The notes under the pieces are model-generated. The model was given only the letters and a program-made list of their open reading frames with translations. It did no database searches and was not told the DNA's origin. A program made the position numbers and the translations under genes. Below, one piece after another: positions 19,256 to 51,596 of a stretch of 64,000 bases of DNA (the first letter of the stretch is position 1; each line of letters begins with the position of its first letter). This stretch comes from Anaeramoeba ignava BMAN. Its lineage: Eukaryota; Protista; Anaeramoebae. The stretch lies in assembly GCA_028826165.1 (NCBI GenBank), contig JAPDFW010000060.1, positions 62,001-126,000 on the forward strand, read 5' to 3'.

Positions 19256-19294
19256 ATTTTTTGATTTTCATTTTTTTTCTTTTTTCAAAAAAAA

Positions 19295-22769: not shown

Positions 22770-24674
22770 ATGAATGAAATTTTATTTTTTGGAAGAAATG
22801 AATTTCCAAAACTTTTAGAAAATAAATCAAATAAAATAACAAAATCAATTCAATTTAAATTTGAAAATGAAAATGAAAATGAAAATGGAAAACAAATTAA
22901 ACAAATTTCATCAGGTTATTTTTCAATAATTTTCCTTTTTAAAAATGGAAAAGCAATAGAATATTTAAATGAAAATGAATTAAATCAAAATCCTGAAAAA
23001 ATCCAAATTGAAGAAAATATTCAAAAAGTAACTGTTGGTTGGGAAAATGAAGCTATTTTAACAAAAGAAGGAAATGTATTTGCCAAAGGAAAAGATATTA
23101 ATCCAAAAAATTCAAAAGAATTTATCAATATTTCATCATTAATTGAAGATAAAAATGATAGAATAATTCAAGATATTGTTTCTGGATCTGTTGCAATTTA
23201 TTTATTAACTTCAAATCAAAATGCTTATGGAATTGGTTCAAATAATTATGGTCAACTTGGTTTTGATTCTAAAACACTTGAAAAAACAAAAAAACCAATT
23301 TTAATGATGAAAAATGTTTCTAAAATATTTTCAGGAAATACTTCAGGAACTGTTTTTCTTTTAAGTTCAAATCAAGAATTATTTGGATGCGGATATAATG
23401 GATCAGGCAAGCTTGGATTAGGAGAATCAATAAAAGAAACAAAAATCGATAAATTAACACAAATCCAAAATATTCCAAAAGGTAAAATAATTGATATTCA
23501 ATCAGGATTTGATTTTTCAATAATGTTGATTGAAAATGAAAATGAAAATCCGAAAAGAAAACTTTATTCATGTGGATTTTATGAATACAATGGACTTGGC
23601 AAAAATGAATATACTTATGAATTTACTGAAATCAAATCATCTTTATTTGAAAATGATGATAATATTCTTGAAATTGTTGTTGGATGTTATCATACTTTGA
23701 TTTTAACTTCCAAATCAAAATTAATTGGATTTGGAAATAATTCTTATGGTCAATTAGGAACTGGAGATATGAATTTCCAAAAAATTCCAACACAAATTGA
23801 ACTTCCTAAATTAAGATTTAATGAAAATATTTCTAATTATCATATTTCTTGTGGAGAATTCAATTCATTTCTTTATTATTCTCCTTCTTCTTTTTCCAAT
23901 CTTGAAGAAGATTTGATAAAATTATTTGAAAGAAAAGAATTTTGTGATATTTCATTTAAAACCAAAAATGGAGAAATAATTGAAGCTCATAAATTAATAT
24001 TGAAATATAGATTAAATCAAAATCAAAATGAAAATCAAATTGAAAAACTTCAAGAAATTATTTCAAAAAAATCAATTAAAGAATCAAATCAAATATTTGA
24101 AATGATTTATTCAAACAATTTCAATATAAATCCAAAATTATATTCTGAAATTAAAGAAATTATAAATTCTAATGAAAAAATTGAAGAAACAATGAAAAGA
24201 ATTTATTTAAATGAAAATGAAAATGAAAAAGATTTTATAATTGAAAGAAAAGAAAAACAATATAAATTTCCTAAATTAATATTAATAATGAGAAGTGAAT
24301 TATATCGAGGAATGTTTTTATCTGTAACAGAAGATAAATCAAATAAAGTTACAGATTATAGTGAATTAAGTAATAAATCATTTCAAATATTTGAATATTG
24401 GATTTATTCAAATCAAATTAAAGATGAAATTGAAATTACACAAGAAATTATTAATGAGTTAGAAAGAGGAATTGATTATTTTCAATTAAATCAAGCAAAT
24501 CCAAATTTATTTCATTTATTAATTAAAAAATTTAATAATCAAAATCAAATTGAAAAAGAAATTGGAATTGGAATTGAAATTGAAATTGAACAAGAAAAAG
24601 AACCAGAACCAGAAATTGAAAAAGAAAAAAGAGGAAAAGAAATCAAAATCAAGAAAAAATGTTATATTTTTTAA
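22770..24674 (+). CDS. RCC1-BTB protein, copy 4, with a polybasic CaaX tail (KIKKKCYIF)
   Basis: Paralogue with a ~40-aa C-terminal extension. Confidence 0.9.
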   Translation: MNEILFFGRNEFPKLLENKSNKITKSIQFKFENENENENGKQIKQISSGYFSIIFLFKNGKAIEYLNENELNQNPEKIQIEENIQKVTVGWENEAILTKEGNVFAKGKDINPKNSKEFINISSLIEDKNDRIIQDIVSGSVAIYLLTSNQNAYGIGSNNYGQLGFDSKTLEKTKKPILMMKNVSKIFSGNTSGTVFLLSSNQELFGCGYNGSGKLGLGESIKETKIDKLTQIQNIPKGKIIDIQSGFDFSIMLIENENENPKRKLYSCGFYEYNGLGKNEYTYEFTEIKSSLFENDDNILEIVVGCYHTLILTSKSKLIGFGNNSYGQLGTGDMNFQKIPTQIELPKLRFNENISNYHISCGEFNSFLYYSPSSFSNLEEDLIKLFERKEFCDISFKTKNGEIIEAHKLILKYRLNQNQNENQIEKLQEIISKKSIKESNQIFEMIYSNNFNINPKLYSEIKEIINSNEKIEETMKRIYLNENENEKDFIIERKEKQYKFPKLILIMRSELYRGMFLSVTEDKSNKVTDYSELSNKSFQIFEYWIYSNQIKDEIEITQEIINELERGIDYFQLNQANPNLFHLLIKKFNNQNQIEKEIGIGIEIEIEQEKEPEPEIEKEKRGKEIKIKKKCYIF

Positions 24675-24767
24675 ATAATCAAAATTAAAATTAAAATTAA
24701 AATCAAAATTAAAATTAAAATTTCAAATTCATTTTTTCATTTTTTTTCATTTTTTTCCTTTTCAAAA

Positions 24768-26579
24768 ATGAATGAAATTTTATTTTTTGGTAAAAATTCT
24801 CATCCAAAACTTATCGAAAATAAACCATATGAAATAACAAAACCAATTCAATTTAAATTTGAAAATGAAAATGAAAATGAAAATGAAAATCAAATTAAAC
24901 AAATTTCATCAGGTTATAATTCAACAATTTTCCTTTTTAAAAATGGAAAAGCAATAGAATATTTAAGTCAAAATGATTCAAAACAAAATACTTCAAAAAT
25001 CCAAATTGAAAATATTCAAAAAGTATCTGTTGGTGACTGGAATGAAGGTATTTTAACAATAGAAGGAAAAGTATTTGCCAAAGGATATGATATTAATCCA
25101 AATAATCCAAAAGAATTTACCAATATTTCATCATTAATTGAAGATAAAAATGATAGAATAATTCAAGATGTTGTTTCTGGAGATCGTTCAGTTTATTTAT
25201 TAACTTCAAATCAAAATGCTTATGGAATTGGTTCAAATAATTTTGGTCAACTTGGTTTTGATTCTAAAACACTTAAAAAAGCAGAAAAACCAATTTTAAT
25301 GATGAAAAATGTTTCTAAAATATTTTCAGGAAATTCTTCATATTCTGTTTTTCTTTTAAATTCAAATCAAGAATTATTTGGATGCGGAAGAAATATTTCG
25401 AGTCAATTTGGATTAGGAGAATCAATAAAAGAAACAAAAATCGATAAATTAACACAAATCCAAAATATTCCAAAAGGTAAAATAATTGATATTCAATCAG
25501 GATTTGATTTTTCAATAATGTTGATTGAAGATGAAAATGAAAATCCAAAAAGAAAACTTTATTCATGTGGATTTTATGAATACAATGGACTTGGCAAAAA
25601 TGAATATACTTATGAATTTACTGAAATCAAATCATCTTTATTTGAAAATGATGATAATATTATTGATTTTTCTGTTGGAAATCAACATACTTTGGTTTTA
25701 ACTTCCAAATCAAAATTAATTGGATTTGGAAATAATTCATATGGTCAATTAGGAACTGGAGATATGAATTTCGAAAAAATTCCATTTCAAATTGAACTTC
25801 CTAAATTAAGATTTAATGAAAATATTTCTAATTATCATATTTCTTGTGGAGAATTCAATTCATTTCTTTATTATTCTCCTTCTTCTTTTTCCAATCTTGA
25901 AGAAGATTTGATAAAATTATTTAGAAGAAAAGAATTTTGTGATATTTCATTTAAAACAGAAAATGGAGAAATAATTGAAGCTCATAAATTAATATTGAAA
26001 TATAGATTAAATCAAAATCAAAATCAAATTGAAAAACTTCAAGAAATTATTTCAAAAAAATCAATTAAAGAATCAAATCAAATATTTGAAATGATTTATT
26101 CAAACAATTTCAATATAAATCCAAAATTATATTCTGAAATTAAAGAAATTATAAATTCAAATGAAAAAATTGAAGAAACAATAAAAAGAATTTATTTAAA
26201 TGAAAATGAAAATGAAAATGAAAAAGATTTTATAATTGAAAGAAAAGAAAAACAATATAAATTTCCTAAATTAATATTAATAATGAGAAGTGAATTATAT
26301 CGAGGAATGTTTTTATCTGTAACAGATGATACTTCTAATAAAGTTACAGATTATAGTGAATTAAGTAATAAATCATTTCAAATATTTGAATATTGGATTT
26401 ATTCAAATCAAATTAAAGATGAAATTGAAATTACACAAGAAATTATTAATGAGTTAGAAAGAGGAATTGATTATTTTCAATTAAATCAAACAAATCCAAA
26501 TTTATTTCATTTATTAATTAACAAATTTAATAATCAAAATCAAAATCAAAATCAAAATCAAAATCAAAATCAAAATTAA
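24768..26579 (+). CDS. RCC1-BTB protein, copy 5
   Basis: Paralogue ending in an (NQ)n tail. Confidence 0.9.
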   Translation: MNEILFFGKNSHPKLIENKPYEITKPIQFKFENENENENENQIKQISSGYNSTIFLFKNGKAIEYLSQNDSKQNTSKIQIENIQKVSVGDWNEGILTIEGKVFAKGYDINPNNPKEFTNISSLIEDKNDRIIQDVVSGDRSVYLLTSNQNAYGIGSNNFGQLGFDSKTLKKAEKPILMMKNVSKIFSGNSSYSVFLLNSNQELFGCGRNISSQFGLGESIKETKIDKLTQIQNIPKGKIIDIQSGFDFSIMLIEDENENPKRKLYSCGFYEYNGLGKNEYTYEFTEIKSSLFENDDNIIDFSVGNQHTLVLTSKSKLIGFGNNSYGQLGTGDMNFEKIPFQIELPKLRFNENISNYHISCGEFNSFLYYSPSSFSNLEEDLIKLFRRKEFCDISFKTENGEIIEAHKLILKYRLNQNQNQIEKLQEIISKKSIKESNQIFEMIYSNNFNINPKLYSEIKEIINSNEKIEETIKRIYLNENENENEKDFIIERKEKQYKFPKLILIMRSELYRGMFLSVTDDTSNKVTDYSELSNKSFQIFEYWIYSNQIKDEIEITQEIINELERGIDYFQLNQTNPNLFHLLINKFNNQNQNQNQNQNQNQN

Positions 26580-30505: not shown

Positions 30506-33500
30506 ATGCTTTCTCCAATTAAACCAACTTTTTTTTTAAATAAAAAAAACAATTCTCTCTTACAATCAAATTTTAATGTAAAAAATTAAAAATTAAAACT
30601 AAAAATAAAAAAAATTTTTTTTTACTTTAAATTTAATACAAAAATAAAAACAATAAATTATTATTTTAAACATTGATCTTTTAAAATTTAAAATTCAAAA
30701 ATAAGAAAAAAAATAAAAAAAAATTTTTTTTTTACTTCAAATTTTAAATTAAAATTAAAATTAAATATTTAAGAACAACAATACAGATTTAGAATTAAAG
30801 TTAAAAAATATCAAAAATGAAGAAAAAAACAATACAAATCTTAATTTAATTTTATAAATGAATTTAATAAATGAATTTTATAATTTAATTTTAATTTAAT
30901 TTTATAAATGAATTTTAATTTAATTTTATAATTTAATTTAATTTTATAAATTAATTTTATATATTAATTTATATATGAATTTTATAAATGAATTTTAATT
31001 TAATTTTATAAATGAATTTTATAAATGAATTTCAATCTAATTTAATAAATGAATTTTAATTTTATAAATGAATTTTATATATTAATTTTATATATTAATT
31101 TAATATATTAATTTATAAATGAATTTAATTTTATATATTAATTTATATTTATAGCGCTTCATAAAAACAGGTGCAAAAAGAATTTTAGAACATCCAGTTC
31201 TCGAAATACCCCAAAGAAAAGAAGTATCTTTCCAATGGAACGGAAAAATTCTATATGGATATGAAGGAGAGATGCTTTCATCAGCCTTAATCGCCAACGG
31301 AGAAGACATTTTCGGATTCCACTACAAAGACAAATCACCACAAGGAATTTTCTGTGCTAACGGACAATGCTCACAATGCATGGTTACCTGCAACGGAGTT
31401 CCAGTGAAATCATGCATGACACCCTTGAAGGAAGGTATGGTTGTGAATTATGCAGCACAAGTTCTTCCTGAATTCCGAGAAAAACTTAACTTGAAAGACG
31501 CGCCCAAATCCGAAATTGATGTTTTGATTATTGGAGGAGGACCATCTGGACTTTCCGCTGCTTGCGAACTTGGAAAAAAAGGAGTCAAAACTCTTCTTAT
31601 TGATGACAAGGATCGATTGGGAGGAAAATTAGTTCTTCAAACACATAAATTTTTTGGATCAAGTGAAGAATGCTATGCAGGAACAAGAGGATATAAAATT
31701 GGAGGAATTTTGACCAAAGAAGTTGAAAAATACTCGTCAGTTCAAGTTGCATTGAATTCAACGGCTGTCGCTGTTTTCTCTGATAAATACGTTGGAATCG
31801 TCAGCAATGGAGAATACAAACTTGTCAAACCCAAAAAGCTTCTTGTTGCTGCTGGAGCTCGTGAGAAATTCCTTTCTTTCCCTGGAAATACTCTTCCTGG
31901 TGTTTATGGAGCTGGTGCTTTCCAGACTCTTGTCAATAGAGATCTTGTCCGTTCTTCTAATAAGGTTCTTATTGTTGGTGGTGGTAATGTTGGTCTTATT
32001 GGTGGTTATCATGCTATTCAAGCTGGTATTGAAGTTGTTTGTTTGATTGAAGCTATGGATCATTGTGGTGGTTATAAAGTTCATGAAGATAAATTGAGAA
32101 GACTTGGTGTTCCTATTTTGACAAGACATACCATTGTTGGTGTTACTGGAAAGGATCATGTTGAGAAATGCACTATTGCTCAATTAGATAATAATTGGAA
32201 AGTAAATAAAATTAAATTAAATTAAAATAAAATTAAATTAAATTAAATTAAATTAATTAAAATTAAAATTAAAATTAAATTAAAATTAAAATAAATTAAT
32301 TAAAATTAAATTAAATTAAAATTAAAATTAAATTAAAATTAAAAATTAAAATTAAAATTAAAATTAAAATTAAAATTAAAATTAAAATTAAAAATAAACT
32401 AAATTTAAAATTAAAAATAAATTAAATTTAAAATTAAATTAAATTTAATTAAATAAAATTAAAATTAAATTAAATTAAATTTAAAATTAAAATTAAAATT
32501 AAAATTAATTTATATTAAATTAGATCATCCCAGGAACTTATAAAACTTACGATGTAGACACAGTCTTGCTTGCTGTAGGTCTCGAAGAATGCAAAGAATT
32601 CTACAAAAAAGCTCAAAATTACGGAATTGATGTCTTCTCAGCAGGAGATGCTCAAGAAATTGCAGAAGCTTCAGCTGCAATGTTCACAGGAAAAATTGAA
32701 GGAAGAAAAATTCTTAAATCATTAGGAATTGATATTGAAATACCAGAAGATTGGGATGAAAAAGTGAAAGTTTTAAAAAGCAAACCAAAAGACACAGATG
32801 AAAAACACATCACAGAGTTAACCGAAGGAGTATTCCCAGTATTCCATTGCCATCAAGAAATCCCATGCAACGCTTGTGTAGCGGGATGTTCATTAGGAAA
32901 CATTTCAATGGGAGAAGAAAATGACATCAAAGATCCACCAATTTTCAGAGGAGATTGTGATGATTGCAACGGATGTCTTAGATGCGTAACAGTATGTCCT
33001 GGATTAGCTGTCACTTTGGTTGATTTCCGAGAAGACGCCGAATTTCCTACAGTCACATTTCCTTATGAAGTCTGGAGAAAGGATGTTGAAATTGGCAAAA
33101 TGGTTCCTATTATGGATGAAGCTGGTTTGATGCTCGGAAAATTCAAAGTGGAAAATGTCCAACAACGCGAACGAACTTTGTTGGTTTCTGTTAAGCTTCC
33201 AAAAGATATTGCTAAAAAAGCAGCTTCTGTTTTTACTCGCGAAATAAAACAAATTCCTGATCTTTATGAAAAATCTAAATTCCCTGATGAATCTATTGTT
33301 TGCCGTTGTGAAAGAGTTTCCGCAAAGGAAATCAGAGACTCAATCCGTTTAGGTGTTACTGATATGAACCAACTCAAAGCTGCTACTAGAGCTTGTATGG
33401 GTGCTTGCGGATCTAAAACTTGTTTCTCAACTATTAAAAGAATCTTTAGAGAAGAAGGTATTCCAAATGATAGAATTACTGACAGAGTCGAAAGACCTTT

Positions 33501-33546
33501 ATTCGTTGAAGTTCCTCTTGGCGCTTTTGCTGGAATGAATCTTTAA
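30506..33546 (+). CDS. Prokaryote-type FAD/NAD oxidoreductase fusion (2Fe-2S, pyridine nucleotide-disulfide oxidoreductase, ferredoxin, BFD-like 2Fe-2S; sarcosine oxidase-alpha / proline dehydrogenase-alpha-like) with a putative organelle presequence; exons 30506-30577, 31155-32201, 32524-33546 (~713 aa)
   Basis: FCANGQCSQC..SC; GGGPSGLSAA; GGGNVG; CHQEIPCNACVAGC; CNGCLRCVTVCP; VCRCERV...GACGSKTC. Both introns are phase 0 and splice in frame. Confidence 0.9.
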
Positions 33547-34620: not shown

Positions 34621-37600
34621 TCATTTCCATTTTCCATGTCTTGGTTTTGATGGATAAGGCCTTTTGTGATGATAATGCCTGTCTCTAAAATCATAATCAT
34701 CATAATCATACTCATTTTCATTCTCTTTGACAATTTTCCTAAATCCTTCATATTCAGTGTTTTTAGAATTTGGAAGAGAATTTCGATCAGGATTAAAATC
34801 AATAAAATAAACAGTTGATTCTGAAGAATCATAAGTTATAAGACTTGGAGAATAAGCATAAAAATGAGCCTCAAACAAAGAAGAAATTTGTGAAGCACAA
34901 TAACGGAACAATGATAATTCAATGTATTTATCAAAAATCTTAGTTGATTCATTCAATCCCATTTTTTCAATTTGTTCATTTATTATCCTCTTTGCAACTG
35001 TCCAATGCGGAGCAAAAACCCACGCTTCTTGGAAATCAATAAAATTCGAAACCATCTCCATATATCTTCCCGACTCAGTTTCTTTCAAATACTTTTTCGT
35101 TGTTTCTTGATTTTCCATTGAATCATTGAAATAATAAGAATAAAACGTTTTTAATCTCATTCGGGCAATATAAAAGAAATCATGAAGAGCTATTTGCTCC
35201 TGGATAGATAAAGGCTCATATCCCAGCAAAAGCTTGCCAACAAAAGGATGAATTCTTCCGTTGAGAATACCAAGAACACTGGAAACAACAACCCTGAATT
35301 GTTTTGTTGGGAAAACATTTGTCGCATGCAACGGAACTTGCACAGCCTTTTTCCAACACTGATCCAAATACCGATTGTAAAAGTCTTTGTCAGGCGAGCA
35401 AAACGGAGCCTGATAAGTCTGCACAATATGGTTGCGAATGAGATTGGGTACAACAATGTTGTTGGAAACGAAACTAGCAAGATCAGGCCGAGAAAGGATT
35501 ATCGGCGATCCAAAATAAGTTCCAAGAATCCGAACTTTTGCTGAGAAATTATGGAAAGTAATGCAAGCATAGCAGGGTTTTCTGATATTCATTGAAGCAC
35601 GTCCAATATACTTGCCATTGCGAGCAAAGGAAACAGAGCCTTCTTCAGCGTTGTAGATAATCGTGATTAAATCGTTTTTTTGCAATGGATCTGTGAATGG
35701 GGATTCATGATTGCTCAACAAAATATCTCCGTTATCAAGTAATCCACAGGATCCAGGCAGAAATCCCACAGGAATGAGTTTGTCAAGTTCGCGATCTGTG
35801 AGGCTTTCTTTCTTGTGCTTCTTCTCATCATCATCATCTTCTGGCTTTTTCTTTTCATTTGTAATTTCACTTAATCTTTGTGATATTCCAATTGAAATTG
35901 AATGAGAAACAACAAACTTCTCAATCATAACTTCCCATATGCATATTCCCTTTTGAGGGAAAGGATCCATAGAATAAATTGTGAGACATTCTGCGTTTCC
36001 AAAGTTGTTTTTGGGGGTTAGTACAAGATCATATTGCGAATTGGATCTCGGATGTTGTAATTGATTAATTTCAACTGAATTCTCATTTCCAATTAAATCA
36101 AATAAAGGATTAAAATGACAATATTTCATTTCCTCCTTTTGCGGATCTCCTTCAAGAATCGAGTCAATTAACCGCATTTGGTTGAGTTGTGATAATCTTC
36201 CAAATGAAGAAACCATCCCAAATAACGCTTCAATCACAGAATAACGAACCTTGTTATACATGAAATGTCCAAATTGTTCTAATTCTTTTGCATTTTTTGG
36301 TTCGTTTTTTCGGAAATATTTTTCTTGATCCGTAATTTCCTTCATTTTTAACTTCGCTAACTCGCGCAATTGCTCAATCATTTCAGGTTTCAACTCAGTA
36401 AGATATTGTGCGTGTTGTTTCTTCAGGAATTTCTTGATGTTCTTCTCAGTTTTTTCGATAGTTTCTTCAAGTTGTTTTCTTGACTTCTTCCGCTCTTCTT
36501 CATTCTTATCAAGAGATAGATCATCAAAAACAGGAGGTGTTCTCTCCACAATCGGTGGATTGAATATTGCTCCTATGCTTTTTGTGAGTGTTGATGTATC
36601 CAGGTTCAGATCTTCGGGTTTTTCAGGTAATTTTTTTGAGTATGTTCGATGATATGGACTTCTTGGAGGTTCGATTGGCACAAATTCAAACCCAAATTCT
36701 TTAGAAATCATCATTTCTTTCCGAAAGATTGATTTGTCCATTTCAGGTGCTGAAAATTCAGAAAGTTTTTCAATTGCTTCAGATTCAGACTCTTGGATTT
36801 CTACTGAAGAAGTTTCTGATGAAATTGAAAAATCAGGTGGAGGAGGTTGTTCCACTTCAAGTTCATCCTGTTTTGGAGTTATCATTCTATCAACATCCTC
36901 CTCCATTTCTTTTGTTTTAGGAATAATAGATCTTTCTTTTCTTAATTCTGATGTCATTTCTAGTTTTCTTGAAGGAGCTAAAGGTGCAGCCATAGTTTTG
37001 AAACCTCCACTTATCATACTTTTTGCATCTTGTCTTGCACTAAAAAATTCTGTTGGTTCTCGTTCTTTTTCAAGCATTTTTTTACCAGAAATTTTTGATC
37101 TGCTTTCTATGTGCAGATCCATATCTATATTCCTACTCAAATCTATTTTCTTACTCATTTCTGTCGTATCCATCTCCATATCCATCATATCCATAACTGC
37201 ATCTGGTTCTTCTAAAGATCTTTGCATTTTTCTTGATTCTTTTTTCTCTCTTTTTTTTTCCTCTTGTCCAATTTTTTCTTTTGCTGCTTTTTGTGGTTTT
37301 GGTTTTGATTTTGGTTTTGCAGATTGCTTAGCTTTTCTTCCTCCAAAACTAAATCCTTTTTTTTTTTTTGATTTCATAGCATAAACTCCATCATCCTCAT
37401 CCATCATCATCAAATTAGCTGATTCCTTATCCATTGACTTTTCCATTGGTCTATAAGAATCCTCAATAGTTGGATCATAACCACCGCCATAACTGTCGCC
37501 AATATCGAGTAAACCTGAATCTTTTAATGCTGATGATTTTGGCATTTCATCAAACATTAAATTTTCCATCATATTCATTTCTGGTATTTGAGGTTGAATT

Positions 37601-40600
37601 TGTTGTTGAGCTTGTATTTGTCCAAGAAATTCATGTGTTTGTATTGGTTGTGATGAAAATGATGGTTGAATTGGTGGTGTTGGTGGTCCTGCTCCCATTG
37701 GTGGTGGTGGTCCTCTCATTAGTGGTGGTCCTTCTCCTGCTACTGGTGGTGGTGGTGGTCCTCCTCTTGTTGGTGGTTTTGGTGGTCCTCCTCTTGTTGG
37801 TGGTTTTGGTATTCTTCCTCTTCCTTTTAATTTTAATTTTAATTTTAATTTTGATTTTGATTTTGATTTTAATTTTGATTTTAATTTTAATTTTAAATTT
37901 AATTTTAATTTTAATTTTAATTTTAATTTTTGATTTAATTTTAATTTAAATTTTTATCCGATTTTGAAAATGAATTTTAATTCTAATTTTAATTTACCAG
38001 TTGTTGTTGTTGATGATTTACGATCTTATTTTTGTTAAACAAATTTTAAAAATTAAAATTAAAATAAAAATTAAGATTAAAATATAAATTCAAATATTTA
38101 TCCTTACGTTTTGTTCTTTTTGAAATACTCTTTGATTTATCCTTTTTTTTCCATACTGATTTACTTTCTTCAAAAGCAAAACTTTCTTCTGCTTCTTCTT
38201 TTTTTTCTTTTTCAACTTCGAGATCTCCATCAGACCAATCAGACTCATCTTCACTATAATCAACATCCTCATCATACATAGTGCGACGAGCACCTAAACT
38301 TGTTTTCAAAAGTGACATTAGATCTTGAGGTCTTTCATCTTGAGCTTTTTTTTGATCTCGATCTGCTACTTTTGTTAATCTTGTTCCTTTTCGAATTTGA
38401 TCTAATAACTGACTTCTACTTTGTGGTTCTCCTTCTCTTCTATCTATTTCTTTTTTCCCCAATGGAAATTGATAAGGTGGTGGTCTTGATGGGTATTTAG
38501 GCGGTGGAGGTATTTTTGGATGATGAATTATTTGCTTTTCAGATTTTTCAATAATTTCCTTTTTTCTTTTTTGAAAAATTTTGCGAATATTTTTCCTCTT
38601 CTTTTCGCGTCTTTCATTTACAACCTGATCAAAATCATTCTGGGTTTTCAAAATCAACGGTTTCAATTCAACACGCATTTTTTTGTCGATTTGCATTTGG
38701 ATTTTCTGTTGAAAATCTAGAGATATTTGCTTGTTCATCTGCGACTCCAAAGCTTGTTGATATAAATTCAACCAAGATTCCTTTTGAGAAAATGTGCCTG
38801 CAAGCTCATCAAGTTTATCATGAAGAGGACGACTCAAAGAATCAGCGGGATACATATTATAAGAGCTCATTCCACCAGTGTTTTTATTATGATAATAATT
38901 TTCTTCCACAATCACTTGCACTTTGTCAATGAAAAAAAATCCCAAATGTTCATTATAACCGGGTCCAGTTGCCAAAAAGAACATTGATAATAAGTCGTTT
39001 TGTTGGAATAAAGAATATTTCTCGCACCGTCTTAACTCTTGATATCCAGGTGCTGTTGGACCCGTTTTCACTTGATTTTTCACAACCGTTGACACGATCC
39101 AAACGTCAGGATCATTTTCCACTGCATAATTTAACAGAAGTGTCCGATCGGCAGACCGCGCAAGTGCAAAGTATTTGATTCGATTCACATCAACGATTTT
39201 CCCGTCATCCATTTGCATTTCTGTTTTGGAGATTGGATCGAATGCTACGTTCAAAATAAATCCTGAAAACGTGATAATTGCAAGAATATTGAAAACAAAA
39301 AACCCAAATAAAATCACTTTTCCAAGTGTTGAATAACTGCTTAAATCTTGCACTTCTCTGTGGAGCATTACTCCAATGCCTGAAATAGCCAATACAAGCA
39401 CAATACAGAAAAATGTGATATATCCTATTAAGTATGCCTTTGTATCCAATAGCATCACTTTTGTTCCATCTTTTTTACGGAAAAATAATTTTGTTCGGAG
39501 TTGATCCAAAAGATTGATATTTGCAATAACAACTTCTTTTCTCATCATAACAGAATAGAATATTACAAGATAGAATAAACACACTAATACATATCCTACA
39601 ATACATCCTATTGTTATTTTGAGATCGATCCCAAGAATGTCATTTAATGTGTGCCAAAGACTGTATGTAACAAATCCCTGCATGATTGTTATTAAGCAAA
39701 ATATTACAAAGAATGTGTATCTTGTTTCTTTCTATTTTTTTTTTAAATTTTCAAATTATTTTCATATTTTCATGTAAATTTTCAAATTTGAAATGAATTT
39801 TATTTTTTCAAATAAATTTACTTTATGTGAAAATCTCACAAGTTTCTTGAAAAATGTTTCTTTTTTTAATATCACTTTTTTTGTTGGCATTAAAACTAAA
39901 AATGGTCCAAATCCCATTGTAACTGCAGAAAACTAAATTTTTTTCCAAATCCAAACAAACAAAATTTCTATTATTATTCTTATTCCTCTTTTTTTAAAAA
40001 AAATTTTTAAAACAAACAAGAAAGCATGATCTCATAAATATATCCATTGCTGAAGTTCCTGAATATTGAGCAGCTAATGAAAATGTTGTTCCTGCAAAAT
40101 AGTATGCAATTGAAATAAAAGAACCTGCCAAACTAAAATATTTTATATATTTTAGATATTTTATATATTTTAGATATATTATATATTTTAGATATTTTAG
40201 ATATTTTATATATTTTAGATATTTTAAATATTTTATATATTTTATATATTTTATATATTTTAGATATTTTATATATTTTATATATTTTATATATTTTAGA
40301 TATTTTATATATTTTATATATTTTATATATTTTATATATTTTATATATTTTATATATTTTAGATATTTTAAATATTTTATATATTTTATATATTTTATAT
40401 ATTTTAGATATTTTAGATATTTTATATATTTTATATATTTTATATAATACAGATATTTTATATATATTAGATATTTTATATATATTAGATATTTATATAT
40501 ATTATAATTTTAAATATTTTAGATATTTTATATATTTTATATATTTTTATATTTTTAGATATTTTATATATTTTAGATATTTTATATATTTTAGATATTT

Positions 40601-40925
40601 TATATATTTTATATATTTTATATATTTTATATATTTTATATATTTTATATATTTTATATATTTTAGATATTTTAGATATTTTAGATATTTTAGATATTTT
40701 ATATATTTTATATATTTTAGATATTTTAGATATTTTATATTCCTTGTTGATTATAATTTGCTAATTGGGAATATTTTTCTTTCAAATTTACCTTCTAGGT
40801 CTATTACAACTCCATTCAAAAGTTTTTTGAATATAACTTTTTGCAGTTCCTAAAACTGTGCTTAAAACAACTAAAACCGTTGAAACAGCAAGATTATTTT
40901 GAACTGAATCTGCAAAATTTGTCAT
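34621..40925 (-). CDS. Large multidomain protein (~7 TM helices, longin-like domain, Pro-rich/WH2-C-A (VCA), Pro-rich and low-complexity region, SPRY, helical C-terminus); exons 40792-40925, 40018-40132, 39822-39932, 38108-39731, 37998-38024, 34621-37823 (~1737 aa)
   Basis: Five GT-AG introns give a continuous 5214-nt frame joining ORFs 38046-39683 and 34621-37719. Motifs are listed in the findings. Confidence 0.75.
40140..40740. repeat. ~10-bp minisatellite (TATTTTATA[TA]/TATTTTAGA) filling intron 1 of the TM-VCA-SPRY gene
   Basis: Directly visible. Confidence 0.9.
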
Positions 40926-41224
40926 ATATTTTAAAAAGAATTTAAATAAAAATTTGAAAGAAAATTTAAATTAAAAAAAAAGAAGAAAGATAACGAAAAT
41001 AACAAATAAAAAAATAAAAAAAATGAAAAAAAATAAAAAAATAAAAATGAGAACCAAAAGAAAAAATTAAAAAAAAAAGAAAAAAAAATTTATTTTAATT
41101 CATATTTTTTAATATATATAATAATTTATATGAAAAAAATATTTTTTATTTTAATTTTTTTTTTTCATTTTTTTTTTAAATTTTTTTTCATTTTTCTTTT
41201 TTTAATTTTTTTTTTGGATTAAAA

Positions 41225-44200
41225 ATGGAAGTTATTAAAAGAATTATTCCAGGAGCTTTAGATAAGGAAAATATAGGTAAAATAAAATAAATAAAATAAA
41301 TAAATAAAATAATAAATAAAATAATAAATAAAATAATAAATAAAATAATAAAATAAAATAATAAATAAAATAATAGGAGCTCTTGATTGGGGAATACAAA
41401 ATCTTGTGGCTTATGCTGCAAGAAATACAATTGTGATTCTCAATCCACAAACTATGCAAGTTGTACAAACTTTAGATGGACATAAAGCAAATATTAAATC
41501 AATTAAATGGTATTTTTATTTTATACCATTTTTTTTTAATTGTTAATTTATATCCATTTGATTTTATTTTTTTTATAAAAAGGACTCGTAATATTTTTAA
41601 TAGAGAAATCACTGATGAATATCAATTACTTCTTGCTTCTGGTGATAAAGCAGGATATATTATTTTATGGGATATTTTTCTTGGAAAAGTATATTATTTT
41701 TTAAAATTAAAATTAAAATTAAAATTAAAATTAAAATTAAAATTAAAATTAAAATTAAAATTAAAATTAAAATTAAAATTAAAATTAAAATTAAAATTAA
41801 AATTAAAATTAAAATTAAAATTAAAATTAAAATTAAAATTAAAATTAATATAAAATTAAAATTAAAATTAAAATTAAAATTAAAATTAAAATTAAAATTA
41901 AAATTAAAATTAAAATTAAAATTAAAATTAAAATTAAAATTAAAATTAAAATTAAAATTATATTAAAATTAAAATTAAAATTAAAATTAAAATTAAAATT
42001 AAAATTAATATAAAAAAATTAATATAAAAAAAGGCACTTGGAACAATATTTTCAGATATTGCTCAGCATAGTCCTGTTTATGCAATGGAGTGGATTGGTC
42101 AAAATCCTTCATATTTATTTACATTTCATTTTCCTTCAATATTTACATTATGGTCAATTAAAAAATTTCCTTATCAAAGACCAACAAAAGTTTGGGATTT
42201 GGAATTAGCACAAAGAATACAATCAATATCTTTCAATCCTTTTCATGACAAAGAACTTGCATTTTGCACAGAAGAAGGATCTTTGTTTATAATTGAAGGT
42301 TTATAGAAAATTAAAATTAAAATTAAAATTAAAATTAAAATTAAAATTAAAATTAAAACTAAAATTAAAATTAAAATTTAAAATTAAAATTTAAAAAAAC
42401 AGATTTTAATACATCAGAAAAACCAAAGAAAATCCAATACAAATTTCGAGTTGATACAACAAAATCAGAACAAAAACCAGAACATAAACCAAAAAAATCA
42501 ACAACACCAAAAAAACAAGTTGAACAACCAAAAACAAATACTTTAAGACAAATCAAATATTCAACAACACACAAAGATATGCTTTATTTTCTTTTTCCAA
42601 GAGAAATTTTCATACTTGATTTAACAATAAGTCAATCTGTTGGATATACAGAAATACCCCAAACAAAATATTCTTTATCAGAAATGATTTATTTAAAAGA
42701 TTCACAAAAATCTTTTGTTTGTCTTCATGAAGATGGAAGTTTAAGTGGTTGGATTCAAGAATCAAACTCAAAAATGTTTTTTCTTCAAATATCTTCCTTT
42801 TCAGATCAATTTAGAATTACAAGAAGTGGGAAATTTGGAGCTTTACTTACAACAGGAATAGTTCCTTCTCCAATTAAACCAAATACTTTTATAGTAGTTT
42901 CATTAGATGGAAAAGTGTAAACAATATTTTAATATTAATTTTAATATTAATTTCAATTTTAATATTAATTTTAATTTTAATTTAAATATTAAGTTGGAAA
43001 TGGAATTTTGATACTCAAAAAATTCAATTACAAAATCAAGATGTTTCACATTCTTCAATTGAAGCCACAAGTGCTCTAGAACTAAAAGAAGTTCTTGAAA
43101 ATTCTTCTGCACAAACTTCAGCAATTAAAGTTTCTGGAAATTCATCTAATTCACATTTAATTGCAATTGGGAAAAAATCTGGAATTATTTTAGTATAAAA
43201 AACAAACAAAAAAAAAGAAGAAAAAACATTATTTTTTTCTTATCGTAAATTTAAATAATTTAGATTGGTGATTTATTAACAGGTGAAATTATTTCTTCTT
43301 TTCGAGTTCATCCAAATCCTGTTGAACAAATAATTTGGATTTCAGAAAATTCTTTGATTTCTTATAGTCTTGAAAAGTATTTATATTTATTTTAAATATT
43401 TATATTTATATTTATTTTAAATATTTATATTTATATTTATTTTGAATATTTATATTTATATTTATTTTAAATATTTATATTTATATTTATATTTATTTTA
43501 AATATTTATATTTATATTTTGTTTTTTAGATTACCTGATAATTCTTTTATTAATTGCTCAATTATTTTGGATATTCACACTGGAAGACAAAAATTATTTC
43601 GTTCAGATATTGTTAATGAAGATGATTATATTAAAGGAATGAGACTATCACCCTCAAAAAAATATTTAGCAATACTTTTTAATGAAAGGTTGATTTTTCT
43701 TTGTTTAATTTAATTGGAAAATTTTTTGAAAGAATTTAATTAATTCAAAAAAAAAAAACAATTTAATTAATTCAAAAAAAAAAAGACCTTTTGAAATTTG
43801 GAATTTAATAACAATGAGTCGTTTACCAACTCTTGAGCATCAAATAATTCAAGATTTACAATGGAGAAATAGAAACAAAACTAGAAGAGAATATTTCTGT
43901 TTTTCATGCAAAGGACAATGTATATAAATTTTAATTTTAATTTTAATTTTAATTTTAATTTTAATTTTAATTTTAATTTTAATTTTAATTTTAATTTAAT
44001 TTAATTTAATTTTAATTTTAATTTTAATTTTAATTTAATTTTAATTTAATTTTAATTTAATTTTAAAAAATTAAGCTATAATATTTCAATATTGTGTTGA
44101 TGGGTCTTTACTTAAAAAGAAAAAGGAAATGCCATACACTTCATCTTTAGGAATTATTTCTCACATTTCATGGATTAATCGGTACAAAAAAAATTTTGAA

Positions 44201-46063
44201 AAAAAAAAAACTTATTTTATAAAATATTTAAAAATTCTTTTTGTTTTTCTTTTTCTTTTTGTTTTTGAAATAGGAATTTTGTCATTGTAAATTCATCAGG
44301 AGTTATTTATCTTTTCGATTCTTCAATGAAAAAACCTATTCCGTTAAATGCAGGATTGAAACCTATTATTAAAGTGATTTCCAATCATCAAAAATCAGAA
44401 TTTTGGACTTTGCTTGTTTTATATTCAAATGGAGAAACAGAAATATATGATTTAGAACATAAAACCAAAATCAGTTCAGATTCAAAACAAAATCACTATT
44501 TATCAGTTGATATTGATTGGATGTCAACAACTCATCCTATTCTTGGTATATATTTTATATATTCATATATTTATATTTCATTTTTTATATTTATTTATAT
44601 TATATTTAGCTGCAAATGATGGATCAATAAGAATTTTTAACGAAACAAGACAAAATTGTCACCATAATTTTCAACTTGAACCAAAACCAAAACTTCATAG
44701 TCCATATTTACTTTCATTAGAAAATGGATTAAGACTTAAAATTTGGATGAAATTCGGACTTAATACTCATTCAAATACTGAAAATCATCCAAAATTACTA
44801 TCTATCGATAAAAACACAATGGATCCTATTGAAAAAGAATTGCTTTCTTTCCCTGATTATATTGTTCCTCGCAAATTATTCTCCAAATTGCAAAACTCTG
44901 ATACTCCAACAAGATGCATGCTTGTTGAAAAATTCTATTCAAATAAAAAAGAGGAAAAGTTTTGGCGTTTGGCTTTATTTTATTTAAATAAGTATTCATC
45001 AGATAGAAAGAATGTAATTAAAAATCAAGAAGATAAAATTGAAGAGAAAATTGAAGAGAAAATTGAAGATAAAACTGAAGATAAAATTGAAGATAAAATT
45101 GAAGAGAAAATTGAAGAGAAAATTGAAGAGAAAATCGAAGATAAAATTGAAGAGAAAATTGAAGAGAAAATTGAAGAGAAAATTGAAGAGAAAATTGAAG
45201 ATAAAATTGAAGATAAAACTGAAGATAAAACTGAAGATAAAATCAATCTTCTTTTATCAGATGGAATTTATCGAAATGAAAAATCACTCAGAAATAGCAT
45301 GAAAGAAAAAGCTGAAATGACCGAAAATAATAGAAACAATAGATATCCATTGGCTCAGAAAGCATATCAAGAATATGTTTATTTAAATGAACAAAATCGA
45401 GCTTTGGAAACACTTTTCTACACTCCACATGATCATCCCGACTTCTTTCCCAACCTTCTTAAATCAGCAATAATCTCAGCAGCAATATCTCCCGAACTCT
45501 TTACACAAACAGTACTTCGCATATCCAACTCTCTTGCAGAACAGAACCGCATTGTGGAAGCATCAAATATCTTATGCTTAACTGGACAAACAGAACTTGC
45601 TTGCGATTTACTGCAAATTAACGGTTTCTGGAAAGAAGCTTATTTCATTGCCAAACTCAATCTTCCTCAAGACAGAATACAATTCTTTTTATCAAGACAC
45701 GCAAACTATCTTGTTTCTCAAAATCGCCATTTTAAAGCTATAAAAATTTATCTCACAATCGGTTATTTTGTAGAAGTTCTTAAACTTCTTAAACAGGTTC
45801 AACATGATGATACTGCTGGTTTGTTTCTTATGGCTTGTCAGGAATATAATCTCCTTCAAGAAGATTCTCCTTTGGTTTCCAAAACTGATTCAAAAAACCA
45901 AAACAGTTTAACTGTAAAGGAAATTCGCCAAATTGTTAATCTTGCAATGATTCAATATCTTGAATCTCTTGGATTAACTCAATTTTCTCATTCTTATGAA
46001 CATCATATTGGTGCAAAAGTTTTTAGTCAAAAATCCGATAAAAAGAATGTTTCTCATAATTAA
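41225..46063 (+). CDS. WDR11: WD repeat-containing protein 11-like, ~12 exons
   Basis: Spliced N-terminus IIPGALDKENIGALDWGIQNLVAYAARNTIVILNPQTMQVVQTLDGHKANIKSIKW, plus LASGD, DIDW...AANDGSIRIF and a helical C-terminus (LCLTG..ACDLLQ..GFWKEA..IAK). Eleven GT-AG introns stay in frame. Confidence 0.85.
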
Positions 46064-46717: not shown

Positions 46718-47296
46718 TTAATTTGTAATACATTTACTATCTTTTTTCTTTGGTTTTACATCTTCATAAAAAATATGAGCAATTTCTTTTAAAACAGTCT
46801 CTAATCCTTTTTGTCTTAATGAAGATATTTCAATATATTTTGAAGCACCAATTTCTTTAGCTAAAACTATTCCTTGTTCATGTGTTATAAAATCTTGATT
46901 TTTTGATTTAAGTTTTTCTTGAGTTTCTTTATCAAATCTTAAATCTGATTTTGTTCCAATTAAAATCCTTTTTGCATTTGGGAGATATTGTTTAATTTCA
47001 GGAACCCATTTTTTAAGAATATTTTCATAAGAAATTGGAGATGCAATTGAAAATATTAAAAGAAATACATCTGTTTCAGGATAAGATAATGGTCTAAGTC
47101 TATCAAAATCTTCTCCTCCAGTTGGATCCCAAAATTCTAATGTTATATTCTTTCCTGAAATATTAAAATCTCCTCTGTAATTATCAAATACTGTTGGAAT
47201 ATATATATCTGGAAATTTTTTATCAATTATTGTCATATAAAGAGAAGTTTTTCCAGTTGCTCCATCTCCAGCATTAAGAATTTTTAAAGGTTTCAT
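46718..47296 (-). CDS. Atypical Rho/Rac-family GTPase (WDPTGGE)
   Basis: GDGATGKT, YIPTVFDNY, RLRPLSYP, TKSD, Rho insert, CITN CaaX. Confidence 0.95.
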   Translation of the reverse strand: MKPLKILNAGDGATGKTSLYMTIIDKKFPDIYIPTVFDNYRGDFNISGKNITLEFWDPTGGEDFDRLRPLSYPETDVFLLIFSIASPISYENILKKWVPEIKQYLPNAKRILIGTKSDLRFDKETQEKLKSKNQDFITHEQGIVLAKEIGASKYIEISSLRQKGLETVLKEIAHIFYEDVKPKKKDSKCITN

Positions 47297-47568
47297 ATTT
47301 TAATCAAAATCAAAAAATGAAAAAAATGAAAAATGAAAAAATGAAACAAAAAAATATTTCTATTTTGATTTTCATTTCTATTTTCATTTCTATTTCTATT
47401 TTGATTTTAATTTTGATTTTGATTTTGATTTTGATTTTGATTTAGGTTTAGATTTTATTTTTCCTTTAAAAAGAATAATTGAAAAATTGAAAATAAACCA
47501 AAAAATAAAAATAAATAAAAATAATCCAAAATAATAAAAGAAATATTGTTCCATTTTCCTAAATATAA

Positions 47569-48144
47569 TTAATTTGTAATACATTTACTATTTTTTTGCT
47601 TTGATTTATCTTCATAAAAAACACAAGTAATTTCTTTTAAAACAGCTTCTAATCCTTTTTGTCTTAATGAAGAAGTTTCAATATATTTTGAAGCACCAAT
47701 TTCTTTAGCTAAAACTATTCCTTGTTCACGTGTTATAAAATCTTGGTTTTTTGATTTAAGTTTTTCTTGAGTTTCTTTATCAAATTTTAAATCTGATTTT
47801 GTTCCAATTAAAATCATTTTTGCATCAGGAACATGATGTTTAATTTCAGGAACCCATTTTTGGAGAATATTTTCATAAGAAATTGGGGATGCAATTGAAA
47901 AAAATAAAAGAAATACATCTGTTCCAGGATAAGATAATGGTCTAAATCTATCATAATCTTCTCCTCCAGTTGGATCCCAAAATTCTAATGTTATATTCTT
48001 TCCTGAAATATTAAAATCTCCTCTGTAATTATCAAATACTGTTGGAACATATATTTCTGGAAATTTTTTATTGACAACTGTTATATAAAAAGAAGTTTTT
48101 CCAGTTGCTCCATTTCCAGCAGTAACAATTTTTAAAGGTTTCAT
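47569..48144 (-). CDS. Atypical Rho/Rac-family GTPase (WDPTGGE)
   Basis: GNGATGKT, YVPTVFDNY, CITN. Confidence 0.95.
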   Translation of the reverse strand: MKPLKIVTAGNGATGKTSFYITVVNKKFPEIYVPTVFDNYRGDFNISGKNITLEFWDPTGGEDYDRFRPLSYPGTDVFLLFFSIASPISYENILQKWVPEIKHHVPDAKMILIGTKSDLKFDKETQEKLKSKNQDFITREQGIVLAKEIGASKYIETSSLRQKGLEAVLKEITCVFYEDKSKQKNSKCITN

Positions 48145-48666
48145 ATTTTAATCAAAATCAAAAATGAAAAAATGAAAAAAATGAAAAATGAAAAAATAAA
48201 ACAAAATATTTCTATTTTAATTTTGAATTCTATTTTCATTTCTTTTCATTTTATTTTTGATTTTAATTTTAATTTGATTTTGATTTTGATTTTATTTTTG
48301 ATTTTGATTTTGATTTTGATTTTGATTTTTGAATTTGATTTTGATTTTAAATTTGATTTTGATTTTAATTTTGATTTTGATTTTGATTTTTCATTTTGAT
48401 TTTGATTTTAATTTTGATTTCGATTTGATTTTGATTTTAATTTTTCATTTTCATTTTGATTTTGATTTTGATTTTCATTTTGATTTTCATTTTCATTTTG
48501 ATTTTAATTTTGATTTCGATTTGATTTTGATTTTGATTTTTATTTTCATTTTCATTTTGATTTTATTTTTCCTTTAAAAAGAATAATTGAAAAATTGAAA
48601 ATAAATCAAAAAATAAAAATAATCCAAAATAAGAAAAGAAATATTGTTCCATTTTCCTAAATATAA

Positions 48667-49245
48667 TTAATTTGTAATACATTTACTATCTTTTTTCTTT
48701 GGTTTTACATCTTCATATATAACATGAACAATTTCTTTTAAAACAGTTTCTAATCCTTTTTGTCTTAATGAAGATATTTCAATATATTTTGAAGCACCAG
48801 CTTCTTTAGCTAAAACTATTCCTTGTTCACGTGTTATAAAATCTTGGTTTTTTGATTTAAGTTTTTCTTGAGTTTCTTTATCAAATCTTAAATCTGATTT
48901 TGTTCCAATTAAAATCATTTTTGCATCAGGAACATGATGTTTAATTTCAGGAACCCATCTTTGGAGAATATTTTCATAAGAATCAGGGTATGCAATTGAA
49001 AAAAATAAAAGAAATACATCTGTTCCAGGATAAGATAATGGTCTAAGTCTATCATAATCTTCTCCTCCAGTTGGATCCCAAAATTCTATTGTTACATTTC
49101 TTCCTGAAATATTAATTTCAACAGTGCATTCATCATATGCTGTTGGAACATATATTTCTGGAAATTTTTTATGGTGAACTGTCATATAAAAACAAGTTTT
49201 TCCAATTGCTCCATTTCCAACACCAACAATTTTTAAACGTTCCAT
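48667..49245 (-). CDS. Atypical Rho/Rac-family GTPase (WDPTGGE; switch I YVPTAYDEC)
   Basis: GNGAIGKT, TKSD, CITN. Confidence 0.95.
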   Translation of the reverse strand: MERLKIVGVGNGAIGKTCFYMTVHHKKFPEIYVPTAYDECTVEINISGRNVTIEFWDPTGGEDYDRLRPLSYPGTDVFLLFFSIAYPDSYENILQRWVPEIKHHVPDAKMILIGTKSDLRFDKETQEKLKSKNQDFITREQGIVLAKEAGASKYIEISSLRQKGLETVLKEIVHVIYEDVKPKKKDSKCITN

Positions 49246-49894
49246 ATTTTAATGAAAAAATGAAAAAATGAAAAATGAAAAAATGAAAAATGAAAATAAA
49301 ATATTTCTATTTTCATTTCTATTTCTATTTTCTATTTTGAATTTGATTTTGATTTTGATTTTGATTTTGATTTTGATTTTTGATTTTGATTTTGATTTTG
49401 ATTTTGATTTTAATTTTGATTTTGATTTTAATTTTGATTTTAATTTTCATTTCTATTTTCATTTCTATTTCTAATTTGATTTTAATTTTAATTTTGATTT
49501 TAATTTTGAATTTGATTTTGATTTTGATTTTAATTTTAATTTTGAATTCTATTTTCATTTCTATTTTCATTTCTATTTCTAATTTGATTTTAATTTTGAT
49601 TTTGATTTTGATTTTGATTTTGATTTTGATTTTGATTTTGATTTTGATTTTGATTTTGATTTTGATTTTGATTTTGATTTTGATTTTGATTTTTATTTTG
49701 ATTTTGATTTTAATTTTGATTTTAATTTTAATTTTAATTTGATTTTGATTTTGATTTTTATTTTGGTTTAGATTTAGATTTTATTTTTCCTTTAAAAAGA
49801 ATAATTGAAAAATTGAAAATAAATCAAAAAAGAAAAATAAATAAAAATAATCCAAAATAATAAAAGAAATAATGTTCCATTTTCCTAAATATAA

Positions 49895-50473
49895 TTAATT
49901 TGTAATACATTTACTATCTTTTTTCTTTGGTTCTACAACTCCATATATAACATGAACAATTTCTTTCAAAACAGTTTCTAATCCTTTATGTCTTAATGAA
50001 GATATTTCAATATATTTTGAAGCACCAGCTTCTTTAGCTAAAACTATTCCTTGTTCACGTGTTATAAAATCTTGATTTTTTGATTTAAGTTTTTCTTGAG
50101 TTTCTTTATCAAATCTTAAATCTGATTTTGTTCCAATTAATATCCTTTTTGCATTTGGAAGATAATGTTGAATTTCAGGAACCCATTTTTTAAGAATATT
50201 TTCATAAGAAATTGGAGATGAAATTGAAAATACTAAAAGAAATACATCAGTTTCAGGATAATATAATGGTCTAAGTCTATCAAAATCTTCTCCTCCAGTT
50301 GGATCCCAAAATTCTAATTTTACATTCTTTCCTGAAATATTAAAATCTCCTGTGTAATTATCAAATACTGTTGGAACATATATTTCTGGAAAAGTTTTAT
50401 TGGCAACTGTTATATAAAAAGAAGTTTTTCCAGTTGCTCCATCTCCAGCAGTAACAATTTTTAAAGGTTTCAT
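49895..50473 (-). CDS. Atypical Rho/Rac-family GTPase (WDPTGGE)
   Basis: GDGATGKT, YVPTVFDNY, CITN. Confidence 0.95.
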   Translation of the reverse strand: MKPLKIVTAGDGATGKTSFYITVANKTFPEIYVPTVFDNYTGDFNISGKNVKLEFWDPTGGEDFDRLRPLYYPETDVFLLVFSISSPISYENILKKWVPEIQHYLPNAKRILIGTKSDLRFDKETQEKLKSKNQDFITREQGIVLAKEAGASKYIEISSLRHKGLETVLKEIVHVIYGVVEPKKKDSKCITN

Positions 50474-50869
50474 ATTTTAATTAAAAATGAAAAAAATGAA
50501 AAAAATGAAAATAAAAAGTGGAACAAAAAAATATTTCTATTCTTTTCTTTTCTTTTCTTTTCTTTTCTTTTCTTATTTTGAAATTTGATTTTAATTTAAA
50601 TTTGATTTTAATTTGATTTTGATTTTAATTTTGATTTTATTTTTGATTTTGATTTTAATTTTGATTTTAATTTTGATTTTAATTTTGATTTTGATTTTGA
50701 TTTTGATTTTAATTTAAATTTGATTTTCATTTTGATTTTGATTTTGATTTTGATTTTATTTTTCCTTTAAAAAGAATAATTGAAAAATTGAAAATAAACC
50801 AAAAAATAAAAATAAATAAAAATAATCCAAAATAATAAAAGAAATAATGTTCCATTTTCCTAAATATAA

Positions 50870-51448
50870 TTAATTTGTAATACATTTACTATCTTTTTTC
50901 TTTGGTTTTACAACTCCATATATAACATGAACAATTTCTTTCAAAACACTCTCTAATCCTTTTTGTGTTAATGAAGATATTTCAATATATTTTGAAGCAC
51001 AAATTTTTTTAGCTAAAACTATTCCTTGCTCATGTGTTATAAAATCTAAATTTTTTGATTTAAGTTTTTCTTGAGTTTCCTTATCAAATCTTAAATCTGA
51101 TTTTGTTCCAATTAAAATCATTTTTGCATTTGGGAGATATTGTTTAATTTCAGGAACCCATTTTTGGCGAATATTTTCATAAGAATATGGAGCTGTAATT
51201 GAAAAAAATAAAAGAAATACATTAGTTTCAGGATAATACAATCTTCTAATTCTATCGAAATCTTCTCCTCCAGTTGGATCCCAAAATTCTAATGTTATAT
51301 TCTTTCCTGAAATATTAAAATCATATCTGTAATTATCAAATACTGTTGGAATATATATGTCTGGAAATTTTTTATTAACAACTGTTATATAAAAACAAGT
51401 TTTTCCAATTGCTCCATCTCCAATACCAACAATTTTTAAAGGTTTCAT
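50870..51448 (-). CDS. Atypical Rho/Rac-family GTPase (WDPTGGE)
   Basis: GDGAIGKT, RIRRLYYP, CITN. Confidence 0.95.
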   Translation of the reverse strand: MKPLKIVGIGDGAIGKTCFYITVVNKKFPDIYIPTVFDNYRYDFNISGKNITLEFWDPTGGEDFDRIRRLYYPETNVFLLFFSITAPYSYENIRQKWVPEIKQYLPNAKMILIGTKSDLRFDKETQEKLKSKNLDFITHEQGIVLAKKICASKYIEISSLTQKGLESVLKEIVHVIYGVVKPKKKDSKCITN

Positions 51449-51596
51449 ATTTTAATGAAAAAAATGAAAAAAATGAAAAAATGAAAAATAAAAAGTGGAA
51501 CAAAAAAATATTTCTTTTCTTATTTTTTATTTTCTTTTCTTTATAAAAATAATCCAAAATAATAAAAGAAATATTGTTCCATTTTCCTAAATATAA

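Follow-up and report, generated by a model that had tools for sequence, protein, structure and literature searches.

A spliced Anaeramoeba ignava gene for a predicted seven-helix membrane protein with a longin domain and an internal WH2-central-acidic motif

Results

Gene structure and expression

The 64,000-nucleotide (nt) stretch of the Anaeramoeba ignava BMAN genome analyzed here (contig JAPDFW010000060.1, positions 62,001 to 126,000; hereafter the window) contains a minus-strand gene at 34621–40925 whose product is predicted to combine seven transmembrane (TM) helices, a longin domain, a motif resembling those that activate the Arp2/3 complex, and a SPRY domain. Coordinates are those of the window and refer to the minus strand unless otherwise indicated. 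The splice model joins six exons into a frame of 5214 nt and 1737 amino acids (aa), with the sole stop codon at its end; all five introns are GT-AG and have a GC-content of 6–16%, compared to 26–35% in the exons. The predicted translation is identical to A. ignava protein P0001 (NCBI and UniRef), and exon 6 alone, used as a query, retrieved a single 1737-aa A. ignava protein carrying the database label 'protein diaphanous'. This label is wrong because the FH2 domain is absent (no Pfam match at expectation values (E) up to 3); there is likewise no GBD/FH3 match in Pfam, and the resemblance to Diaphanous-type formins is limited to proline-rich stretches.

Exon 1 (40792–40925, with the ATG at 40925) encodes aa 1–45, including TM1, and is supported by the splice model and by the loose end of a spliced contig. 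Intron 1 (40133–40791), also supported by model and transcript, comprises 659 nt of AT-rich simple repeats. Exons 2 and 3 are supported by the model, the transcript and homologues: exon 2 (40018–40132) encodes TM2 and the start of TM3 and shares 66–71% identity with A. flamelloides homologues, while exon 3 (39822–39932) completes TM3, with a conserved GPFLVL.P motif, and continues into a basic cytosolic loop. Exon 4 (38108–39731; model, transcript and Pfam) encodes TM4–7, the longin domain, a probable coiled coil, a proline-rich segment and the WH2-containing motif described below. It is followed by a 27-nt micro-exon 5 (37998–38024; model and transcript) and by exon 6 (34621–37823, stop codon at 34623–34621), which carries a second proline-rich block, a probable Ras remnant, a low-complexity region, the SPRY domain and a probably helical C-terminal domain.

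Transcript evidence comes from one assembled run (X1), the sole run covering the region, which derives from a different allele or strain than the genome; no library type is recorded for it, yet its contigs are spliced. A 2130-nt contig joins exons 4, 3 and 2 without introns 2 and 3. Past exon 2 its loose end is the end of exon 1, and past exon 4 its loose end reads the micro-exon and then, directly, the first bases of exon 6. In this allele the micro-exon is one codon shorter (24 nt). A second contig spans 34755–37727, and the depths of the two are 99.6 and 111. The full gene is not contained in any single contig, the gap falling in the proline-repeat DNA of exon 6 (repeats were skipped in the comparison). 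Between transcript and genome 11 of 16 substitutions are silent, against an expectation of 22% (p = 7e-5). We conclude that this is one spliced gene and that it is expressed. The initial annotation had proposed just such a frame, with five GT-AG introns and a micro-exon, and had called for RNA across the junctions 38108/38024 and 37998/37823; the model was reproduced, the database protein is identical to its translation, and the contig end reads across both junctions in the predicted order. An alternative in-frame splice of intron 2 (40013/39922) is excluded by the transcript. Retention of intron 4 (38046–38107) would give a shorter protein ending ~60 aa past the acidic tryptophan described below, for which there is no transcript support.

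The predicted membrane bundle and longin domain

The N-terminal region (aa ~12–283; 39243–40892) is predicted to form a bundle of seven TM helices with the N-terminus outside and the C-terminus inside. The hydropathy of homologues, a homologue's structural model with seven helices and a positive-inside pattern of charges all point to this arrangement, in agreement with the seven hydrophobic segments first noted in the sequence. TM2 is weakly hydrophobic in the window protein (no 19-aa window above 1.4) and clear in homologues. Structural evidence for the full bundle is the model of a homologue that is 51% identical over TM4–7 and the longin domain. Neither this model nor sequence searches matched the bundle to a G-protein-coupled receptor (GPCR), to any other solved protein in the PDB or to a Pfam family. 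The loops on the outside are just 11–13 aa long, and these two observations do not sustain the earlier description of the protein as receptor-like; the bundle does contain conserved intramembrane Gln, Pro and Tyr residues. The bundle is predicted to be a seven-helix anchor from which the long tail extends into the cytosol. A fold search with model m5dc9999b0d6d returned weak shape matches (TM score ~0.3) that extend over the TM and longin parts; the matched proteins are uncharacterised, come from Asgard archaea and measure 436 and 753 aa, a lead only.

Immediately after the bundle lies a stretch (aa ~303–440; 38772–39185) predicted to adopt a longin fold of the VAMP7/Sec22 type. No Pfam Longin match was obtained for the window protein; the assignment draws on ESM features, a weak profile match to VAMP7 and the fold of the homologue, which together back the longin-like stretch proposed earlier and refine its extent to ~38772. 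The charged helical linker that follows (38532–38759) is a probable coiled coil. It was considered as a SNARE motif and rejected: neither Pfam nor a profile built from the family's R-SNAREs detects an R-SNARE motif in exon 4 or exon 6. All hydrophobic peaks precede the longin domain, and hydropathy thus indicates no C-terminal anchor.

An internal WH2-central-acidic motif

Downstream of a short proline-rich segment (aa 526–545; 38457–38516) are a WH2 domain (aa 556–579; 38355–38426), a central (C) helix of the form L-x3-L-x3-L-x2-RR (aa 590–603; 38283–38324) and an acidic (A) segment containing Trp619 (aa 607–621; 38229–38273). Together these make up a WCA motif, comparable to the verprolin homology-central-acidic (VCA) regions of class I nucleation-promoting factors (NPFs). 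The WH2 domain scores 25.0 bits against a Pfam cut-off of 23.1 when the piece is excised and is also above the cut-off in the genome scan. Alignments of a 94-aa region to human WAVE1 (E 0.0017) and N-WASP (E 0.02) extend across W, C and A. The genome encodes canonical VCAs of four types, all C-terminal, and a profile constructed from four of these VCAs alone aligns with nearly the full length of the internal WCA. The score against the canonical VCAs was reached by none of 2000 full shuffles and by one of 2000 shuffles that kept the WH2. Spacing is also comparable: WH2 start to C is 32 aa and C to Trp 28 aa in the window protein, versus ~29–37 and ~29–32 aa in three of the genome's VCA types. 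The claim that W, C and A occur in the order typical of class I NPFs is therefore well founded in these matches. Key residues of the motif are shared by both Anaeramoeba species and by CRuMs, and the flanks are unalignable. The Arp2/3 subunits ARPC2 and ARPC3 are encoded in the genome. Because exon 6 is spliced on after the WCA, the motif does not stand at the C-terminus of the protein; a longer proline-rich block (37660–37809) follows it.

The remaining tail

Exon 6 contains the peptide YDPTIEDSY (aa 786–794; 37453–37479), the switch-I/G2 nonamer of Ras, for which the chance expectation is 1e-8; the peptide is also retained in A. flamelloides. It is followed by a basic KKKKGFSFG motif (37342–37374) that in Mantamonas homologues comes after either an R-SNARE or a circularly permuted Ras (cpRas) domain. 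Nonamer and basic motif together share 46% identity with Mantamonas P0058 over 46 columns (E 4e-5). The window protein has no GTPase domain: of the order G3-G4-G5-G1-G2, only the G2 peptide is left. It is probable, from these alignments, that YDPTIEDSY is the remnant of a circularly permuted Ras domain.

A SPRY domain with a charged insert (35533–35940) scores 30.4 bits against a Pfam cut-off of 26.3 (excised piece), as the initial annotation had expected. Beyond it lies a C-terminal domain common to the family (34735–35517), probably helical and with no Pfam or PDB match. A likeness of this domain to DUF4238 (ESM 0.92, low recognition) was rejected, the motif-like stretch not being conserved in homologues and Pfam giving no match; a kinase-like reading of the C-terminus is unsupported. 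The architecture first proposed thus stands for the seven helices, longin, WCA and SPRY, and had missed the Ras remnant, the helical C-terminal domain and the variable slot to which we now turn.

A family with a variable slot

A HMMER search with exon 4 against 1.8 billion representatives gave 40 matches; two further profile searches of a word-indexed database added only P0056–P0058, and scans of metagenome contigs found nothing. Named members with both the seven helices and the longin domain come from A. ignava, A. flamelloides, Diphylleia rotans, Mantamonas plastica and Rigifila ramosa. They share a plan: seven TM helices, longin, helical linker, a variable slot, a low-complexity region, one or two SPRY-type domains (detectable by Pfam in most members, not all) and the common C-terminal domain. 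Bundle-longin and SPRY occur in one chain in homologues from both Anaeramoeba species and Mantamonas. Choanoflagellates and metagenomes contain relatives that have the seven helices and no longin; their tails are of SAM, kinase-like or MORN type.

Across the family the slot holds a WCA, an R-SNARE, tandem Q and R SNAREs or a circularly permuted Ras. In the window protein it contains the WCA and the Ras switch-I peptide and no SNARE. Related actin-type modules occur in A. flamelloides P0056 and P0002 (a WCA with a long spacer), in Rigifila (C-A without a separate WH2) and in Mantamonas P0055 and the metagenomic P0018 (WH2). In Diphylleia a degenerate WH2, C and acidic Trp are followed immediately by an R-SNARE (46 bits). 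An R-SNARE motif after the longin is present in P0004, P0007 and P0054 and is weak in P0057. In A. flamelloides P0004 it is followed by a syntaxin-like stretch, recognized by eye and from the database name, and A. ignava P0054 (G000:C99:133000-137000, locus L014) has Q-type motifs and an R-SNARE in one chain; its gene model appears mis-spliced near aa 120–140. The Mantamonas isoform P0058 carries the circularly permuted Ras (order G3-G4-G5-G1-G2) and has its first 404 and last 379 residues in common with P0057, which carries the R-SNARE; the two are possibly alternative cassettes, paralogues or a chimeric assembly. No recognisable slot module (WCA or SNARE) was found in paralogues P0011, P0012 and P0014 or on contigs C4 and C65.

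Five loci of the family occur in A. ignava. In a midpoint-rooted tree of TM4–7 and longin, whose deep branches are unresolved, the window gene and the SNARE paralogue of A. ignava form one group (98/93); in another, the WCA genes of A. flamelloides fall together with the SNARE gene of the same species (100/98). WCA genes group with SNARE genes of their own species, and therefore the modules do not track clades. The simplest reading of the tree, helped by Diphylleia, is an ancestor that carried both WCA and SNARE, with duplication and subsequent loss sorting the two; the pattern would look the same under gene conversion or exon shuffling. Since the family is also found in CRuMs, it is not an invention of the Anaeramoeba symbiosome, and it is older than that compartment.

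Discussion

What does a protein of this kind do? We lean, by little more than an even chance, toward an integral-membrane activator of Arp2/3 on an endomembrane, with both activity and location deduced by analogy. In this capacity the protein would be a multi-pass scaffold behaving like a class I NPF within the bilayer. The bundle would serve as anchor; by analogy with the biochemistry of WASP and WAVE, WH2 would bind an actin monomer, C and A would bind and activate Arp2/3, and the proline-rich segments may recruit profilin-actin or SH3 partners. The outcome would be branched actin on the protein's own membrane. The longin of VAMP7 directs sorting to endosomal, lysosomal or phagosomal membranes; the longin here may likewise sort the protein to one of these, and may also bend back onto the tail. 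To judge from its relatives, the ancestral gene would have had the combination of WCA and R-SNARE seen in Diphylleia, probably with a cpRas as well, and would have linked the assembly of actin and of SNAREs on a single organelle; the modules would later have been divided among paralogues, the window copy becoming the actin-specialised one. In the SNARE-bearing relatives a long distance separates the motif from the anchor and no C-terminal TM helix is present, which makes a role in tethering or in regulating SNARE assembly more plausible than one as fusogens.

Several observations weigh against an activator. The fold model was made on a homologue and not on the window protein. The motif is internal, with Trp619 of 1737 residues leaving 1118 aa downstream. 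In A. flamelloides the WCA is decayed or absent in P0003 and P0006 and interrupted by a 70–100-aa insert in P0056 and P0002. Within the WCA (38269–38353) fall three of the five amino-acid differences of the transcript's allele together with a two-codon insertion, although these spare the key Leu, Arg and Trp positions, and most differences elsewhere are silent.

The internal position lends some credence to a protein whose WH2 and CA bind while productive activation is blocked, so that Arp2/3 and actin are tethered or damped on the organelle, for which Gadkin and Arpin provide the comparison. The C-A of Rigifila without a separate WH2 and the long W-to-C spacer in A. flamelloides would preserve binding more readily than activation. 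The canonical spacing of W, C and A in the window copy and its proline-rich flanks speak for activation instead, and we consider such a tether unlikely, if a serious contender. Less probable again is that the WCA is a decaying vestige on a trafficking scaffold that works through its bundle, longin, SPRY and C-terminal domains, as the module-less paralogues would. Several paralogues lack both WCA and SNARE, the Ras domain is already reduced to a peptide, and replacement changes cluster in the WCA (a post hoc observation on small numbers); yet the key residues persist across Anaeramoeba species and CRuMs despite unalignable flanks, and the motif scores far higher against canonical VCAs than shuffled sequences do.

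A true receptor or transporter, with a bundle that gates the WCA on sensing a ligand, a lipid or the pH of the lumen, would accord with seven helices, the N-out/C-in topology, the conserved intramembrane residues and the kinase-like, SAM or MORN tails of longin-less relatives; given the short outside loops and the lack of a GPCR match we regard it as improbable. Scarcely credible is a mis-joined model, or two adjacent genes, one for bundle, longin and WCA ending at 38046 and a separate one for SPRY. With intron 4 retained, the exon 4 frame does end in a stop at 38046, and no single contig spans the gene, but the spliced contig links exon 4, micro-exon and exon 6, and the homologues carry both halves in one chain.

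An activator built into the membrane would differ from the known systems. Class I NPFs comprise WASP, WAVE/SCAR, WASH, WHAMM/JMY, WAML and WAWH (PMC3298513, PMC10330494), with which the window protein shares a proline-rich segment followed by WH2, central helix and acidic Trp segment at canonical spacing. WASP-family VCAs sit at the C-terminus, by which the family is defined, and the word 'transmembrane' is absent from the survey of that family (PMC3298513). Here the VCA is not C-terminal and no subfamily N-terminal domain is present (no WH1, WHD, WAHD-type or similar Pfam match in exons 4 and 6 or in homologous N-termini), seven predicted TM helices and a longin standing in its place; for these two reasons it is not a WASP-family member. 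We rate it as a protein that would work like a class I NPF yet lacks two of the family's defining features. ActA and Burkholderia thailandensis BimA (PMC6712393) also have a membrane anchor and a non-terminal Arp2/3-activating region, an activity that is putative in the window protein; unlike it they are bacterial mimics with a single anchor and no longin, SPRY or multi-pass bundle, and homology is not expected.

The longin fold appears nearest to VAMP7 and Sec22, and paralogues have a true R-SNARE after it. Unlike VAMP7, Sec22b and Ykt6, the window protein has its longin behind seven TM helices, with no C-terminal anchor and no SNARE motif; on its domain content it is not a longin R-SNARE. 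Phytolongins and Sec22a/c (PMC2779197) are likewise derivatives of longin-SNAREs in which the SNARE motif is replaced or lost, but theirs is an N-terminal longin with a C-terminal anchor and no WCA or SPRY. As in the cpRAS proteins (PMC2430557), P0058 has the order G3-G4-G5-G1-G2, and the G2 peptide of the window protein occupies the corresponding position; the contexts described for cpRAS are VWA proteins and one COG2373-like protein, with TM segments, longin and SPRY unmentioned (PMC2430557).

No description of the bundle-longin-WCA-SPRY architecture was found in the literature searched (most subscription journals lie outside it), in keeping with the initial annotation, which knew of none. 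The family appears to be undescribed, and two of its domains have no known match. Our broadest proposal, which we hold tentatively and at somewhat less than even odds of being right, is of an old, undescribed multi-pass longin family with an uncharacterised seven-helix fold, kept in Anaeramoeba and CRuMs and bearing interchangeable effectors (WCA, R- and Q-SNAREs, cpRas); the window copy would be an integral multi-pass eukaryotic Arp2/3 activator, and the Diphylleia form would unite the nucleation of actin and the assembly of SNAREs within a single polypeptide. To our knowledge, the known eukaryotic activators of Arp2/3 are soluble and are recruited to membranes by lipids, GTPases or adaptors. 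A membrane-built activator, if true, would tie branched-actin assembly to its organelle with no need for recruitment, an arrangement otherwise known from bacterial mimics. In deep-branching protists, the family links a VAMP7-type longin, SNAREs, WCA and permuted Ras to a membrane domain with an uncharacterised fold, and so bears on how actin and the fusion machinery were coordinated in early eukaryotes. The Anaeramoeba symbiosome resembles an arrested phagosome, and endosomal and phagosomal regulators are expanded in these organisms (PMC11550330). A symbiosome role for the window protein is possible, and it is a concrete candidate for localisation in Anaeramoeba.

Neighboring genes

Head to head with the gene, starting ~290 nt from its ATG, is a WDR11 gene (41213–46063, plus strand; Pfam WDR11 propeller and TPR); WDR11 functions in the capture of endosome-to-trans-Golgi-network vesicles. 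Immediately downstream and convergent is an intron-split fusion of 2Fe-2S, FAD oxidoreductase, 4Fe-4S and BFD domains (31272–33546, plus strand). Six tandem Rho-like GTPases with altered G3 motifs (DPTGG or DPIEG) lie at 46718–52175 (minus strand), and an ATG2-like gene, its ATG2_CAD match below the cut-off, at 56412–61439 (minus strand). Tandem RCC1-BTB genes occupy 15249–26579 (plus strand), with an actin-family gene (19295–20428) inserted among them.

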